Positions 49,519 through 58,712 of a stretch of 64,000 nucleotides of DNA are shown in pieces. A program made the translations under genes and the position numbers. A model generated the notes under the pieces. It worked only from the letters and a program-made list of their open reading frames with translations, was not told the origin of the DNA and searched no databases. Every line of letters begins with the position of its first letter. Position 1 is the stretch's first letter. The stretch is from Piromyces finnis finn (taxonomy: Eukaryota > Fungi > Neocallimastigomycota), in NCBI GenBank assembly GCA_002104945.1, contig MCFH01000062.1:186001-250000 (forward strand), given 5' to 3'.

Positions 49519-51733
49519 TTAATTTGAAGTAGAATTAGCTAAAGTAGAATTAGCTAAAGTAGAATCAGTTGAACCAGAATCAGTTGAACCAGAATCAGTT
49601 GAACCAGAATCAGTTGAACCAGAATCAGTTGAACCAGAATCAGTTGAACCAGAATCAGTTGAACCAGAATCAGTTGAACCAGAATCAGTTGAACCAGAAT
49701 CAGTTGAACCAGAATCAGTTGAACCAGAATCAGTTGAACCAGAATCAGTTGAACCAGAATCAGTTGAACCAGAATCAGTTGAACCAGAATCAGTTGAACC
49801 AGAATCTTCAGCTGTAGTAGTAGTTTCTACTGGAGTAGTAGTAGTAGTAGTTTCTACTGGAGTAGTAGTAGTAGTAGTAGTTTCTACTGGAGTAGTAGTA
49901 GTAGTAGTAGTTTCTACTGGAGTAGTAGTAGTAGTAGTTTCTACTGGAGTAGTAGTAGTAGTAGTAGTTTCTACTGGAGTAGTAGTAGTAGTAGTTCTAC
50001 TGGAGTAGTAGTAGTAGTAGTAGTTTCTACTGGAGTAGTAGTAGTAGTAGTAGTTTCTACTGGAGTAGTAGTAGTAGTAGTAGTAGTTTCTACTGGAGTA
50101 GTAGTAGTAGTAGTAGTAGTTTCTACTGGAGTAGTAGTAGTAGTAGTAGTTTCTACTGGAGTAGTAGTAGTAGTAGTAGTTCTACTGGAGTAGTAGTAGT
50201 AGTAGTAGTTTCTACTGGAGTAGTAGTAGTAGTAGTAGTTTCTACTGGAGTAGTAGTAGTAGTAGTAGTTTCTACTGGAGTAGTAGTAGTAGTAGTAGTT
50301 TCTACTGGAGTAGTAGTAGTAGTAGTAGTTTCTACTGGAGTAGTAGTAGTAGTAGTAGTTTCTACTGGAGTAGTAGTAGTAGTAGTTCCTACTGGAGTAG
50401 TAGTAGTAGTAGTAGTTCCTACTGGAGTAGTAGTAGTAGTAGTAGTTTCTACTGGAGTAGTAGTAGTAGTAGTAGTTTCTACTGGAGTAGTAGTAGTAGT
50501 AGTAGTTTCTACTGGAGTAGTAGTAGTAGTAGTAGTTTCTACTGGAGTAGTAGTAGTAGTAGTTCCTACTGGAGTAGTAGTAGTAGTAGTAGTTTCTACT
50601 GGAGTAGTAGTAGTAGTAGTAGTTTCTACTGGAGTAGTAGTAGTAGTAGTAGTTTCTACTGGAGTAGTAGTAGTAGTAGTTTCTACTGGAGTAGTAGTAG
50701 TAGTAGTTCCTACTGGAGTAGTAGTAGTAGTAGTAGTTTCTACTGGAGTAGTAGTAGTAGTAGTAGTTTCTACTGGAGTAGTAGTAGTAGTAGTTCCTAC
50801 TGGAGTAGTAGTGGTAGTAGTTTGTACTGGAGTAGTAGTGGTAGTTTCTGGTTCATCTCCACATTTTTCACCATATTTACTTTGACATCCAAGTTTAAAT
50901 GAACAGAAAGGACCAGTTCCACAATAACCTTTTCCACTACAACAATTACCAGTTGCACAAGATCCCTTATCTTCACCACATTTACAAACACCATATTCAA
51001 TTTGGCATCCCTTATTAGAATAACAAAATGCTGGAGTTCTTCCACAGTAACCCTTTTCACTACAGCAATTACTATCAGCACAAGATCCCTTACCTTCACC
51101 ACATTTACAAACACCATATTCAATTTGGCATCCCTTATTAGAATAACAAAATGTTGAAGTTCTTCCACAGTAACCCTTTTCACTACAGCAATTACCATCA
51201 GCACAAGATCCCTTACCTTCACCACATTTACAAACACCATATTCAATTTGGCATCCCTTATTAGAATAACAAAATGTTGAAGTTCTTCCACAGTAACCCT
51301 TTTCACTACAGCAATTACCATCAGCACAAGATCCCTTACCTTCACCACATTTACAAACACCATATTCAATTTGGCATCCCTTATTAGAATAACAAAATGT
51401 TGAAGTTCTTCCACAGTAACCCTTTTCACTACAGCAATTACCATCAGCACAAGATCCCTTACCTTCACCACATTTACAAACACCATATTCAATTTGGCAT
51501 CCCTTATTAGAATAACAAAATGATGGAGTTGTTCCACAATAACCTTTTTTGCTACAACATTGACCATCAGGACATTTTCCAAAATTTACACCGTTTACTA
51601 TACCACATCTTTGAACGTCTTCTCTTTTTTCTAAATTTTCACTTGAATTTTCAGTTAAAAATTCAGAAATTGAAAATGCAAATACTGTATATGAAAGTGT
51701 TATTATTAAACTAAACAATATAAATATTTTCAT
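49519..51733 (-). CDS. Secreted protein with six tandem CBM18 (hevein) domains, a long PVET(n) mucin-like stalk and a (GSTDS)n tail; apparent frameshift(s) inside the Thr repeat
   Basis: Signal peptide, EKR site, and 41-aa CCSEKGYCG units. After the shift, ..[25 protein letters not shown] ends in a stop at 49519-49521. Confidence 0.85.
49561..49806. repeat. 15-bp perfect tandem repeat (GAACCAGAATCAGTT, ~16 copies) encoding GSTDS on the minus strand
   Basis: Direct inspection. Confidence 0.95.
49812..50840. repeat. ~1-kb (GTA)n-based minisatellite encoding PV(E/G)TTTTTT
   Basis: Units of ttctactgga(gta)n of variable length. Confidence 0.95.
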
Positions 51734-53656: not shown

Positions 53657-53873
53657 TGTTAGAATATGTGAAACGTTATGTCACATGTATTCAAATGTAT
53701 TGAAATGTATTAAAACGTATTTGTATATATTGTATTTGATTATATGTTTAAGCCACAATGTAAATGTATAAATACATGTAGTTTTAGAAGAATGTAACGC
53801 AAGTAGTTCTTTATCATAAAATATATTAATAAAGTTGACATAATTATAAACCTAAATTAAACAACTCTTAATA
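53657..53873 (+). repeat. 5' LTR (217 bp)
   Basis: Matches 58263-58479. Confidence 0.93.
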
Positions 53874-54536
53874 GATTAAGAGTCTCAATGACTCTCATGA
53901 GAGAATATCAATGACTCTCATTGACTCTCAGATGATTCTCTGAAAGATGAATCAAACCGCCGGACACATTATGTCATAGGAGAAAACTATTGGAAACCCT
54001 AATCCCTACAATATAAGTTTTAATTGAAAATTATGAAATTTAGAGATCTAAAACTTTGAAATCTTGAAATCTCAAAAACTAAGTCACAAAATTGCCTAAT
54101 TAACAATACTGACTATATAGCGAAAGAAAACTCCGTCCAAGAAACATGGAACATTGATAATATTATACTTTAGACATAAATTAATTTATACTAAATAAAA
54201 TAATTTAGATTTAGATCTTAAATTTAAGAATAAACAAACATTTAAATTTAAAAATTAAAATTTATAATTTAAATTTAAGAACAATTGAAATTCAGAAATT
54301 TAAGTTGAAATTTAAAATTTAAAATAAATAAATTTATCCATTTTTAAAAGTAATTTAAATTTTAAACTAAACAATATGTTTATATTAGAAATAATAGAAT
54401 TTCATTCTCAACTTACTTTATTCACCACAAATAGTATAAATTAGCTAATAAAATCCAAAATTTTATTTTATATAATTATTTACAATTGAGTTATTAAATT
54501 TCATCAAATATATTAATATTATAAATACTCCAAAGA

Positions 54537-55841
54537 ATGAGATTAAGAAGCAAAGTAATATATTTTTTAAATATTTTTTCGACAATTTTAATTCTACCAT
54601 TGGTAATTGCTGAAAATCAAAAATGTCATGTAACCAATGTCGGAACAGGTGTTTGCGTTAATGAGGATCAATGTAAATTAAATGGTAAACAAACTGGCAA
54701 TGCTAAAGTATATCCAAAAATTTGTAAATATGACTCGGAAAAGATTAAATGCTGTATAAAGGATGTCGATACACTTACAGATGGAACAATTCTTCCAACA
54801 ACAGGAAAATGTAAAAATATAAATGAAGGTAACTGTTCAGAAGAATCTTACACGAGATATAGGAACCAATGCCCAGGAGATGATGTTGTTCAACTATGTG
54901 TTCCAAATACAAATCTAAATAATAATACAGATATTGATGATGTAAATTTAAATTTAAATGATAACTGTCCTGAAGTTACAGTTAGTCAAATGCTGCCAAT
55001 GTTAAATCCAGCATACACAATTGCTGAAGTTACAATAAAATTTATTGAAGCGTATAAAAATTCTAGGCCATCTACATATAATTATATATCTGATTTAGCT
55101 ATGGCAATTGGCCATTATAGAGGAAAGTCTGGAAAAACAGTACCTGCAAGCAATACTCTAATTAATGAAGAAATGAAAAAGAGTTTGAAATACAAAAATA
55201 TGATAAAAGAACTAAAAAAAATAATTAAAGATAAAGTCACAGATGAAAAAATAGAAAATAAAACTGTAATAAGAAATGCAGAAAATTCAGGTAGAGGACT
55301 TTGGTGTTTAACGTTAGGAAGCTATTATGTCAATATTGATTATGCTTTTTATCCAAAATCCGGATGGAACACTGTTAAAATTCATTTTTCAGGATATGAC
55401 ACATGGGATTTTGAACACATCAAAAAAGAGAAAGATCAAAATGTTCTTAAAAATTTATGGAATGGAATAAAAACTGGAATATATAATATTCTTGAAGAAG
55501 ATATTCCAAGTTTTATCGCAGGAGATGGTAAAACATATGATATTACTTATGATTTTTATGACGAAGTAACTTTTTTTTATGGATACTCACCTTCAGAGTA
55601 TTTTAATTTTGGGAAAAGATCTGTAGATGCATCAAGCGAAATATGTAATTTTTACACATTCAAATACATTGATACATACGACTACATTGATGAAGATGAT
55701 GAAGATGATGAAGATGACGAAATATGTTATAATTATTATAAAGATGAAAATGGTTCAATAAATTCAATTCACTTTAATATTTTTAACATTGTTATTATTT
55801 TAACTTCAGTCATATTCTTGCAATTAATCAATTTATATTAG
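54537..55841 (+). CDS. Secreted protein: Cys-rich N-terminal module, colicin-M-like putative toxin domain, KR site, acidic stretch, hydrophobic anchor
   Basis: Signal peptide, G.CV....C...CC.K and CPG...LC modules, HYRGKSG / TLGSY / YDTWDF / GKTYDI motifs, GKRS site, tail IVIILTSVIFLQLINLY. The ORF is certain; the function is inferred. Confidence 0.75.
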   Translation: MRLRSKVIYFLNIFSTILILPLVIAENQKCHVTNVGTGVCVNEDQCKLNGKQTGNAKVYPKICKYDSEKIKCCIKDVDTLTDGTILPTTGKCKNINEGNCSEESYTRYRNQCPGDDVVQLCVPNTNLNNNTDIDDVNLNLNDNCPEVTVSQMLPMLNPAYTIAEVTIKFIEAYKNSRPSTYNYISDLAMAIGHYRGKSGKTVPASNTLINEEMKKSLKYKNMIKELKKIIKDKVTDEKIENKTVIRNAENSGRGLWCLTLGSYYVNIDYAFYPKSGWNTVKIHFSGYDTWDFEHIKKEKDQNVLKNLWNGIKTGIYNILEEDIPSFIAGDGKTYDITYDFYDEVTFFYGYSPSEYFNFGKRSVDASSEICNFYTFKYIDTYDYIDEDDEDDEDDEICYNYYKDENGSINSIHFNIFNIVIILTSVIFLQLINLY

Positions 55842-56599
55842 AATTACTTAATTTCGTCAACTTTACAATATAAATTCATTAACATTTTCACATATATAAT
55901 TATAAATAATCATTTATTAACATACATAATTTCATAAAATAACATTATTGTTATTGAAAGCATACATATTTATTTCAAGTAAATATATTGTTTGTGTAAT
56001 AATTAAATACATTAACTACTACTATTTCAATGAGAAAATATTCTTTCTGCCATAGGGGAAAGAAAAAATATAAAGAAAATACATAAAATTTATACAATTA
56101 GAAACATGAACTAGAATAATTAAATATTATTTGATTAGTTTGCATAAAATATCTTATTGTAATGAAATTATGCAATGAACATTGAAACTATCCTTGTGAA
56201 AATGTCAATCAATTTCTTTATGATAATTTCACTCAAATCAGTATTATATAATTTAATCCAGTATACTATTCTTTGAATTAAATCATTATAACAATACTTT
56301 AAGATAATATTTAGCCTCAAAAGCATTATTTATATTATTGCTTCCTATAAAGCAAATATATTACTGGTCAAATGCTCATCCCGTAGGCTGTTATTGCTAA
56401 TATACATAGCAAATATTTCAAATGAGGTAATTTATTAAAGTTAGAAATGCTTAGCGTGAAATGAGCATATTCTACATATATATATACTTTGAATAACCTA
56501 GCGTGAAATGGGTATATTCAATAATATTTTAACAACTTATCATGATTTAACTTAGCGTGAAATGAGTTATATTCATAGATAATTATTAATGATGGTTTT

Positions 56600-56880
56600 A
56601 GACCTATATATATTTAATTTGGTCCCATCAATAACAATGTAGCACCTTCATAGTAAGGGCTCCTTAGATTTAGATGACATTGATTCATCATATTTATTTA
56701 TTACCAACATTCAAGAATGTTGTGACGCCGTTTTAAAATATAATTTACGGTGATTTAGTAACCTCATATATAAATCGCCACTTTCAACGTAGTGAGTGAT
56801 CGCCAACCAATTAGCTGACATTCTAATTAACCGAGCCGACTTCGATATAATTTAGAAGAACTTTATTCTCTTCAACAATC
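56600..56880 (+). pseudogene. Heavily decayed copia RNase H remnant
   Basis: aac caa tta gct gac att cta = NQLADIL, cf. the copia C-terminal QLADI(L/F)TK motif. No ORF survives. Confidence 0.5.
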
Positions 56881-57660
56881 GATATTTTAAATGTCATTAT
56901 CTTACAATATTAACTTGTTATAATTTTACTGGTATATCTACTTATTTTAATTTGAAGTAAAGAAATACATAATTGAGGAATATTTTATTCATTAGTTTGA
57001 TATTCTATGATTATCACTACATTAAAATATATTATCATGAAAATATTATTTCACTATATTTTAAAGGATAAGCAATTGAGAAAAATGAATGAAAACATTA
57101 GAATATGTTATTTATTATTTATATAGGTATTAATACTTATCGTATATGTTATGGAAAATTATTCATTATTATGAAAATTTGATGCAAAATGAATGAAATT
57201 TTATGAAATTTAAATTTCTCTTTTTCAAATCTAAGTATTTATTACTAAACATCTAGATTTGAGGGGGAAGTAGTGAATATACGAAATTTAAAATTCAAGA
57301 TAATAATTTTTGTTTCTAGTTAAACATTGGAAATAACTAAAACATTGCATAGAAACTAAGGCTTAATAAATAGAATGAATTGAAATTCAAATTGTAAAAA
57401 TTTATAAGATTCAATATGTAAAAATGAAAAGAACAAAATTTCAAATAAAAAGTAAAATATTCTTAAATATTATAAGAATAATTAATCAATACAAAAGGCA
57501 TAAAAGGAAGGAAAAACACCTAAAAGAAAATGTTAAAATTCAATATACATAAACTAAATAACTATTAAGAATTTAATTAAAATTTTACCATTATTAATTA
57601 GTATTTACAAATAGATTGAAATACAATTATGCTAATATTCTAAAGAAAATTGTAATTATA

Positions 57661-57895
57661 AGGACATAAAACCAGAGAGTTATCCATAGGTTGTCCGAAG
57701 AACGTAAAACCAAGAAGATTAACCATAGGTTGTTAAGAGAACGTAAAACCAAAAAGAGTTATCCATATGTGTTGTCATAAGGACGTAAAATCAAAGGTTA
57801 ACCATGAGTTGTTAAGAAAACGTAAAACCAAAGAGGTAAACCATGCGTTGTCATAAGGACGTAAAATCAAAGAGATAAACCATGTGTTGTCTATA
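57661..57895 (+). repeat. ~6 degenerate ~40-bp tandem repeats (ACGTAAAACCAAAGAG.TAACCATG.GTTGTC) in the element's 3' region
   Basis: Recurring acgtaaaa(c/t)caa and ccat..gttgt blocks. Confidence 0.8.
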
Positions 57896-58262
57896 ATTCT
57901 GTGTAAATCTCAGAGAGATTACCAATATAGTTTATAGGATAATGTAAAACCGGAAGGGTTTTCAATCCTTAATGGATGGTATAACAATTTATGAATATCC
58001 AATCCAAATTTTAAACTTTAATACTACCAAATTATACAAAGGTTTTCAGTTTATCCATAAAAACGAAGTTATAGGGTAATATTTAAATTCTTTAAAGCAA
58101 TTAGCGAATAATATATGTGAAATATTTTAAATTCCAATTAATGAAATATAAAAATTTTAAACATTAGATTTAGTTTATAGTTAATAGTTTAGAAATAATA
58201 AAATGCACATATTCACCAGCAAACCAAATTTTACTTAGTAGAAAATTAGGTTTGAGGGGGAA

Positions 58263-58479
58263 TGTTAGAATATGTGAAACGTTATGTCACATGTATTCAA
58301 ATGTATTGAAATGTATTAAAACGTATTTGTATATATTGTATTTGATTATATGTTTAAGCCACAATGTAAATGTATAAATACATGTAGTTTTAGAAGAATG
58401 TAACGCAAGTAGTTCTTTATCATAAAATATATTAATAAAGTTGACATAATTATAAACCTAAATTAAACAACTCTTAATA
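58263..58479 (+). repeat. 3' LTR (217 bp)
   Basis: Follows the PPT and is followed by TSD AATAC. Confidence 0.93.
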
Positions 58480-58712
58480 AATACATAGTCTTAATTATTA
58501 ATAATAATAATAATAATAATAAAGAAATAAAAAAAATATCCTATTGTCCCTATTGTCTTATTATGTTATTAATAAAAATTATAAATATATATATATTTAT
58601 AATTTTACTAGATTGGTAGAACTAGAACAGTGATTTTAAAATAATTTATAAAATCTATATAATTATTATTGCATAATATTATATATTATATAATATTATT
58701 ATTATTAATTCA

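Follow-up and report, generated by a model that had tools for sequence, protein, structure and literature searches.

Does an anaerobic gut fungus encode an enzyme related to colicin M? The question is raised by a gene at positions 54537-55841 (+) of a 64,000-nucleotide stretch of Piromyces finnis DNA (assembly GCA_002104945.1, contig MCFH01000062.1, positions 186,001 to 250,000 of the forward strand), which is called the window here. Enzymes of the colicin M (ColM) type are lethal because they destroy lipid II, the precursor common to all peptidoglycan. In two reviews, proteobacterial bacteriocins are the only form in which these enzymes appear (PMC8469651, PMC5821083). The ColM fold has since been recognized in further bacterial toxin domains, among them type VI secretion system (T6SS) effectors; no eukaryotic ColM-like or ColM-fold protein was found in the literature searched. 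A reading of the letters of this DNA (the sequence-only reading) had proposed a horizontally acquired, lipid II-degrading bacteriocin domain in fungal secretory packaging. Our analysis of predicted structures indicates that the domain is very probably homologous to the ColM catalytic domain and shares its fold. We favour, with less assurance, a borrowed antibacterial cell-envelope enzyme; for lipid II cleavage specifically, we put the prospects at slightly below even.

The gene is a single uninterrupted intronless open reading frame (ORF) of 434 amino acids plus stop, according to the ORF listing and translation, in a very AT-rich source genome of 56.5 Mb on 232 contigs. Its P. finnis paralogue P0001, which is 90 % identical and 433 amino acids long, is annotated as a single-exon hypothetical protein. 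The features of the domain are as follows.

55074-55583 (+): predicted colicin M-fold domain, residues 180-349 (about 170 amino acids), delimited by the family profile, the structure model, fold matches and profile-profile alignment
55113-55133 (+): HYRGKSG motif, H193-G199, aligned on ColM H135-Y-L-W-G-N-G141 (relaxed hhalign comparison)
55311-55325 (+): TLGSY motif, T259-Y263, aligned on ColM AYLGN (L196, G197)
55398-55415 (+): DTWDFE, candidate catalytic acidic motif, D288-E293, aligned on ColM D226-K-Y-D-F-N
55497-55562 (+): E321 through the GDGKTYDITYDFYD strand, with E321, G331, Y334 and I336 on ColM E241, G252, Y255 and I257

Predicted fold of the domain

The domain was modeled from two alignments: a first model from 6 sequences, with a predicted local distance difference test score (pLDDT) of 75, was superseded by an AlphaFold model from 62 sequences (pLDDT 89.2, predicted template modeling score 0.81). 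When the second model was searched against the PDB with Foldseek, ranks 1-14 were occupied by colicin M, PaeM, syringacin M, pectocin M2 and the C-terminal domain (CTD) of BtpeA, with E-values of 7e-4 to 0.12, probabilities up to 1.00 and template modeling (TM) scores of 0.47-0.50; after rank 14 there was a break to E 0.33 and probability 0.04. An aligner independent of Foldseek placed the whole model on the catalytic domain of each ColM-type match: pectocin M1 (Z 7.1, 139 residues aligned), BtpeA CTD (6.1, 145), syringacin M (5.7, 138), colicin M (5.3, 134) and PaeM (5.2, 138), the next match reaching Z 4.1 with 66 residues. In the ESM Atlas, the matches were YD-shell/RHS toxin tips (TM 0.67 and 0.59), DUF3289 (0.61 over 144 residues) and colicin M (0.57 over 139 residues). 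The matches of the 6-sequence model were weak, yet members of the ColM family already predominated among the leading hits of both searches.

The structure model therefore matches the ColM catalytic fold and essentially no other, in line with the resemblance that the sequence-only reading had proposed and for which superposition had been set beforehand as a refuting test. Since the matches are exclusive and full-length and agree across three libraries and two models, we consider a shared ColM fold the clear reading.

Motif and active-site comparison with colicin M

For comparison with ColM, the cma gene of plasmid pAPEC-O1-ColBM was used as the reference; 28 relatives were collected, 16 were aligned, and the profiles were compared by hhalign. 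The local alignment set GYDTWDF on YDDKYDF, with D288 on D226, W290 on Y228, D291 on D229 and F292 on F230, and also paired E321 with E241 and the three strand residues with the ColM residues listed above. At a relaxed threshold, the alignment was collinear through the whole domain, adding A190, H193-Y194 and G199 on A132, H135-Y136 and G141, and L260-G261 on L196-G197. The score of 21.6 was reached by none of 150 column-shuffled controls (mean 12.5, SD 2.3, maximum 20.0) and compares with 13.0 for a reversed control; hhalign itself reported P = 0.007 for this one comparison, with a low probability of 5 %.

The motifs are kept among homologues, as seen in the 62-sequence alignment, and are collinear with those of ColM, a point that had also been chosen beforehand as a refuting test. 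Position 288 is Asp in 46 of the 62 sequences and Glu or Asn in 12, and position 291 is Asp in 50. Position 290 is aromatic and G261 is present in all 62, F292 is found in 60, and position 321 is acidic in 61. In the HYRGKSG motif, H193 is His in 53/62, the R195 position is Arg or Lys in 50/62, and G199 is kept in 57/62. The elements that the sequence-only reading had picked out, namely AIGHYRGKSG (H193 at 55113), LTLGSYYV, SGYDTWDF (S285-F292, 55389-55412), DGKTYDITY, GKR and a hydrophobic tail, all lie where it had put them and in its order. Its caveats, Trp in place of Tyr and no Arg after DxWD, also hold.

A coincidental likeness, produced by short motifs and a common alpha/beta arrangement, would be consistent with the weak sequence statistics (hhalign probability about 5 %) and with Z-scores below the level that the aligner calls safe. 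However, three independent structure searches, with alignments spanning the whole domain, led to the ColM family and to hardly any other, the poorer first model gave the same list, and four motifs are collinear with a score above all shuffles. We regard coincidence as very improbable.

An unnamed family of toxin tips and secreted proteins

Searches with the protein, the isolated domain and the 6- and 62-sequence profiles gave no significant match in Pfam (including Colicin_M, PF14859, and DUF3289, PF11692) or NCBIfam. The same queries gave nothing significant against PDB chain sequences by phmmer and hmmsearch, with no match to ColM or BtpeA. An asd_B match at E 0.12 was rejected as noise. When the domain profile was searched against 1.84 billion representative proteins, 118 matches were obtained at E <= 1e-3 and 75 at E <= 1e-10. 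The fungal domain carries the family signature over the whole of about 160 residues: HYR(S/G)xxGG, TLGSY, DxWDF and ExIPxxxAGxGxPFxI.

The fungal-type members are Lys/Asn-rich and have signal peptides, and four of them carry hevein-type chitin-binding domains; further family members carry ricin-type lectin or LysM domains. In the bacterial members, which match with E-values down to 1e-30 and beyond, the domain stands at the extreme C-terminus after an RHS core. RHS repeats were recognized by Pfam in 5 of 61 scanned members, P0054 has a YD-shell, one cluster mate is named 'RHS repeat-associated protein', and some bacterial relatives lie in cassette arrays. The bacterial taxonomy of these relatives is that of Atlas labels and cluster names; a related-locus search with a narrower alignment returned one fragment only, from a Muribaculaceae metagenome-assembled genome.

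At both of the two bacterial loci examined, a small ORF with a lipoprotein signal start (lipoboxes FIGC and GMGC) lies directly downstream of the toxin gene. The two ORFs are barely similar to each other and have no Pfam match; periplasmic immunity proteins, as known for ColM immunity, would fit. A complex prediction for a bacterial toxin domain and its downstream lipoprotein scored 0.00, which gives no verdict and counts neither way. The use of the domain as a toxin tip, together with the lipoprotein ORFs that follow it, points to a lethal envelope target. A metagenomic protein of 305 amino acids (P0080) has the predicted ColM-fold domain at 26-194 fused to a C-terminal Lactococcin_972 domain at 248-301 (E 1.8e-7, scoring above the Pfam cut-off). 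Lactococcin 972 appears beside colicin M in a review of lipid II, as one of the antibacterials that bind this precursor, and the fusion points to lipid II.

The family also extends to a second eukaryote. A protein of the parabasalid Histomonas meleagridis (P0060) falls in a separate clade with support of 98/96, together with P0062, P0066, P0069, P0070, P0071, P0087, P0094 and P0101, among them similar metagenomic proteins with signal peptides; the tree is unrooted and its labels are composition proxies. This placement suggests that a second lineage of gut eukaryotes took up the domain. Regarding the horizontal acquisition claimed by the sequence-only reading, the RHS/YD-shell-tipped bacterial relatives support a bacterial toxin ancestry; the direction of transfer and the donor we only infer.

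Comparison with known toxin systems

The fungal domain resembles the colicin M family (PF14859: ColM, PaeM/pyocin M, syringacin M, pectocins M1 and M2) in its predicted catalytic fold and in the collinear elements A..HY..G.G, LG, DxArDF (Ar being Tyr in ColM and Trp here) and E...G..Y.I, and the domain is C-terminal to targeting modules in both. Unlike the colicins, the fungal protein is packaged for a eukaryotic secretory route and has no immunity gene beside its own, and it lacks a TonB box and an outer-membrane receptor-binding domain; its N-terminus consists of a predicted signal peptide and a Cys-rich module as on fungal lysozymes.

DUF3289 is a periplasm-toxic structural homologue of ColM, used as a T6SS effector with DUF943 immunity (PMC11148199). 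Its fold is similar to that of our model, and it sets an example of a ColM-fold toxin that has diverged and depends on delivery instead of diffusing freely. Its delivery context differs from that of the fungal protein. The CTD of BtpeA, a Bacteroides fragilis T6SS effector (PDB 9jdi; Foldseek E 0.03), was the second-best match by the independent aligner. It is a toxin tip of a gut bacterium, and BtpeA has a cognate immunity protein, but no sequence-level match to the fungal domain was found. The bacterial RHS/YD-shell toxins are true members of the same domain family, with the domain at the same extreme C-terminal position after the YD-shell. They differ in contact-dependent delivery and in the small lipoprotein ORFs downstream, whereas the fungal protein relies on a signal peptide, together with a Cys-rich module and a GPI (glycosylphosphatidylinositol)-like tail, and its locus has no ORF of >=60 amino acids in the 2.55-kb segment downstream, where the bacterial loci have lipoprotein ORFs. 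A 2025 survey unified a novel toxin domain with the Colicin M fold and found it paired with BamE-like periplasmic immunity proteins. The present family may include that domain as its bacterial branch.

Re-use of a bacterial weapon by a eukaryote living among bacteria has precedents. Tick dae amidases are antibacterial genes transferred to eukaryotes. The GH25 lysozymes are a further case (PMC4241558), and both belong to other enzyme classes than the present domain.

Evidence against a colicin M-like activity

A number of results weigh against an antibacterial enzyme of the ColM type. The Colicin_M profile gave no match at E up to 10 with the protein or the domain, and none in the 61 relatives at E <= 0.01; the DUF3289 profile PF11692 matched neither the query nor the 61 relatives. 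The active-site signature of ColM is DxYD(x5)HR (PMC8469651, PMC5821083), in which D226, Y228, D229, H235 and R236 are all essential (PMC8469651). In the fungal domain DxWD is present (D288, W290, D291) with no HR five residues on, and nothing conserved corresponds to the H235-R236 dyad, whether in the query or in the 62-sequence family consensus. The ColM domain of PmnH, with the altered motif HxYD(x5)FK, appears inactive (PMC8469651). D288 and D291 are not invariant in the counts given above, the hhalign probability is low, and the TM-scores of 0.45-0.67 and Z of 5-7 are moderate. Among recent paralogues, no purifying selection was measurable, and the gene occurs in public runs whose type is uncertain, so that they give no firm support for expression. 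A search of the six-frame genome with the Colicin_M model also found nothing, but it likewise found nothing in control genomes and is a weak blank. Two conserved residues might compensate for the missing HR: N317, which lies close to where the dyad would be, and the Arg or Lys at R195 within the HYR motif.

Because no profile match was obtained and the HR dyad is absent, the domain is not in the Pfam Colicin_M family; it is a distinct, unannotated sister family beside PF14859 and DUF3289. This raises the alternative that the ColM fold does another job here, cleaving or binding a different envelope or lipid-linked molecule (carrier intermediates of teichoic acid or O-antigen, a membrane lipid head group) or serving as a non-catalytic binding module. 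Its separation from both named families, the lost dyad and the change of Tyr228 to Trp speak for this, and a shared fold does not fix the substrate. However, the acidic motif and E321 are conserved exactly at the positions of ColM D226, D229 and E241, the toxin-tip use with downstream lipoprotein ORFs suits a lethal envelope target, and the Lactococcin_972 fusion suits lipid II. We judge another job for the fold rather unlikely, though worth keeping in view, and continue to favour an antibacterial cell-envelope enzyme.

Secretory packaging and the shared chassis

Outside the domain, the protein has the following features.

54537-54611 (+): predicted signal peptide, residues 1-25, with a charged MRLRSK start, a hydrophobic core and VIA|EN at its end; read from the translation and identical in the lysozyme paralogues
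54612-54941 (+): Cys-rich N-terminal module, residues 26-135, 76-85 % identical to GH24 lysozyme paralogues P0003/P0004 and L004-L009
55614-55619 (+): dibasic K360-R361, possible kexin site after the domain, read from the translation; KR or RR stands at the same place in L002, L003, L010 and P0005
55689-55721 (+): acidic Asp/Glu run in the stalk, D385-E395, read from the translation
55749-55838 (+): candidate GPI signal, with small residues N405-G-S407, a polar spacer and the hydrophobic tail I415-Y434 (55779-55838), a pattern common to all paralogues

Residues 1-135, comprising the signal-peptide-like start and the Cys-rich module, recur at 76-85 % identity on at least six GH24 lysozyme proteins (PF00959, E 9e-26). 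The module is thus of the kind found on peptidoglycan-active enzymes, as the sequence-only reading had suspected, and its shape resembles the N-termini of fungal lysozyme and NlpC/P60 proteins in a low-confidence Atlas comparison that serves as a lead only. The arrangement of its Cys residues also called a beta-defensin to mind, an idea that was not kept. The proteins built on this chassis end alike, in small residues (NG), a spacer and about 20 hydrophobic residues. These GPI-type features were read by eye and, with the signal peptide, are visible in all paralogues whatever the enzyme domain; the shared tail looks like a GPI signal, and the protein is probably secreted and surface-anchored. 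The dibasic pair after the domain occurs in the ColM-like paralogues, L010 and P0005; the lysozyme paralogue P0003 lacks it, and P0004 has KKK at about that place.

On sequence grounds, residues about 180-349 are the mobile domain, and the ColM-fold and GH24 enzymes look like swapped cassettes within one chassis. In other contexts, the enzyme domain is present as a tandem duplicate behind different Cys-rich repeats (P0002) or almost by itself (P0005). In L010 (514 amino acids; L010:640-2184 (-), G000:C151), it is followed by a second domain with a Cys...His pattern. This second region was blank in Pfam and PDB sequence searches and was nearest to NlpC/P60 and CHAP clusters in an Atlas language-model search, a lead only; L010 is a possible two-warhead protein. 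The lysozyme paralogues L004-L009 (G000 C43, C182, C189, C200, C35 and C222) agree with the ColM-fold gene in the signal peptide and Cys-rich module, in the tail and in the flanking repeat.

That the domain and lysozyme are mounted on one modular chassis suggests an arsenal dedicated to fighting bacteria. We also considered a role at the fungus's own surface, in remodeling of the wall or of GPI proteins or in chitin-associated functions. The GPI-like tail and Cys-rich module suggest residence at that surface, some relatives carry chitin-binding domains, and a chitin-binding mucin-like gene adjoins. Its chassis-mates are a lysozyme and an NlpC/P60-like domain, however, and fungi do not contain peptidoglycan, their substrate; the bacterial relatives are toxin tips. 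A role confined to the fungal surface is improbable.

The repeat-bounded unit

The gene lies in a unit bounded by direct repeats.

53657-53889 (no strand assigned): 5' copy of a 233-bp direct repeat, 98 % identical to 58263-58495
58263-58495 (no strand assigned): 3' copy of the 233-bp direct repeat, bounding the unit that contains the gene
55931-58479 (no strand assigned): non-coding 2.55-kb repeat downstream of the gene, with at least 25 genomic copies at 93-99 % identity

The 55931-58479 segment contains no ORF of >=60 amino acids and no Rfam match. All paralogue loci share three segments, namely the 5' repeat, the upstream region with the 5' part of the coding sequence, and the downstream non-coding segment; the enzyme-coding middle is the sole segment that differs. 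Three full-length copies of the ColM-fold gene are present in the genome (the window copy, L002 and L003), and each is an intact ORF of 432-434 amino acids that keeps every conserved motif residue. The window copy differs from L002 and L003 mainly at 55660-55841, the last ~45 residues, where dS (synonymous divergence) is ~0.4 compared with ~0.01-0.03 elsewhere, as if its tail had been exchanged by recombination.

The gene could be a functionless passenger that was recently copied by the repeat element and is decaying. The 3' part of the repeat-bounded unit is present in the many near-identical copies listed above, and most other examined repeat copies have no long ORF in the cargo slot. In addition, the ratio of non-synonymous to synonymous divergence (dN/dS) among the recent paralogues is not below 1, with 1 synonymous against 8-9 non-synonymous differences in the domain, although these substitutions are too few to be informative. 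Against decay, all three copies are intact, and the ORF is covered by contigs of three public runs. The motifs also persist in fungal-type relatives at 40-60 % identity, which is evidence of constraint over the long term. We consider a decaying passenger slightly less probable even than a role at the fungal surface, and an antibacterial function remains our preferred reading.

Proposed mechanism

In the mechanism that we propose, the signal peptide would send the protein into the secretory pathway, and the Cys-rich module, which the lysozymes share, would probably target or stabilize the enzyme at the bacterial wall. The GPI-like tail would hold the protein to the surface of the fungus, from which a putative kexin cut at K360-R361 could free the enzyme. 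The domain would then hydrolyze lipid II, the most probable substrate, or a related undecaprenyl-pyrophosphate intermediate of bacteria with an accessible membrane, using conserved D288, D291 and E321 and probably, like ColM, a divalent cation. This would bring the synthesis of peptidoglycan to a halt, and competitors would lyse. Gram-positive bacteria would be the likeliest targets because their lipid II can be reached without an import system. The fungus itself has no lipid II and would therefore need no immunity protein; the lack of an immunity gene is what one would expect.

If this reading is true, it adds an unannotated third branch to the ColM fold, one that gut bacteria mount at the tips of RHS toxins and that two unrelated lineages of anaerobic gut eukaryotes, fungi and parabasalids, took up. 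It would also supply new lipid II-targeting enzymes that need no Gram-negative import system, and an antibacterial arsenal of this kind bears on competition between fungi and bacteria in the rumen. A broader and more speculative proposal is that anaerobic gut fungi possess their own, eukaryotic version of bacterial polymorphic toxin systems. The fixed part would be a chassis for secretion and anchoring, which combines the promoter region and signal peptide with the Cys-rich module and the GPI-like tail and lies in a repeat-bounded, recently amplified unit. The exchangeable part would be the antibacterial warhead: a ColM-fold enzyme, a GH24 lysozyme, or a pair of ColM-fold and NlpC/P60-like domains. 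The present protein would then be the first eukaryotic lipid II-degrading enzyme, acquired independently by parabasalids. Taken as a whole, this proposal is doubtful, though possible.

Other observations at the locus

In two other copies of the repeat unit, the cargo position holds unrelated ORFs with no obvious signal peptide, of 196 amino acids at L024:1041-1631 (+) and 102 amino acids at L025:2842-3150 (-). The adjoining gene at 50153-51733 (-) encodes a secreted protein of 526 amino acids, in which hevein-like Cys-rich units are repeated and a long mucin-like tail is rich in Thr and Pro.

The contigs from the three public runs, which are of uncertain type, fall to zero in the AT-rich spacers; such patchy coverage is suggestive, being consistent with RNA but no proof of it. 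The deepest contig coverage of the region in these runs lies over 55931-58479 (also 56409-58532). Just before position 54074, upstream of the ORF, contigs of all three runs start with a poly-A run of 18-20 nucleotides that is not in the genome.

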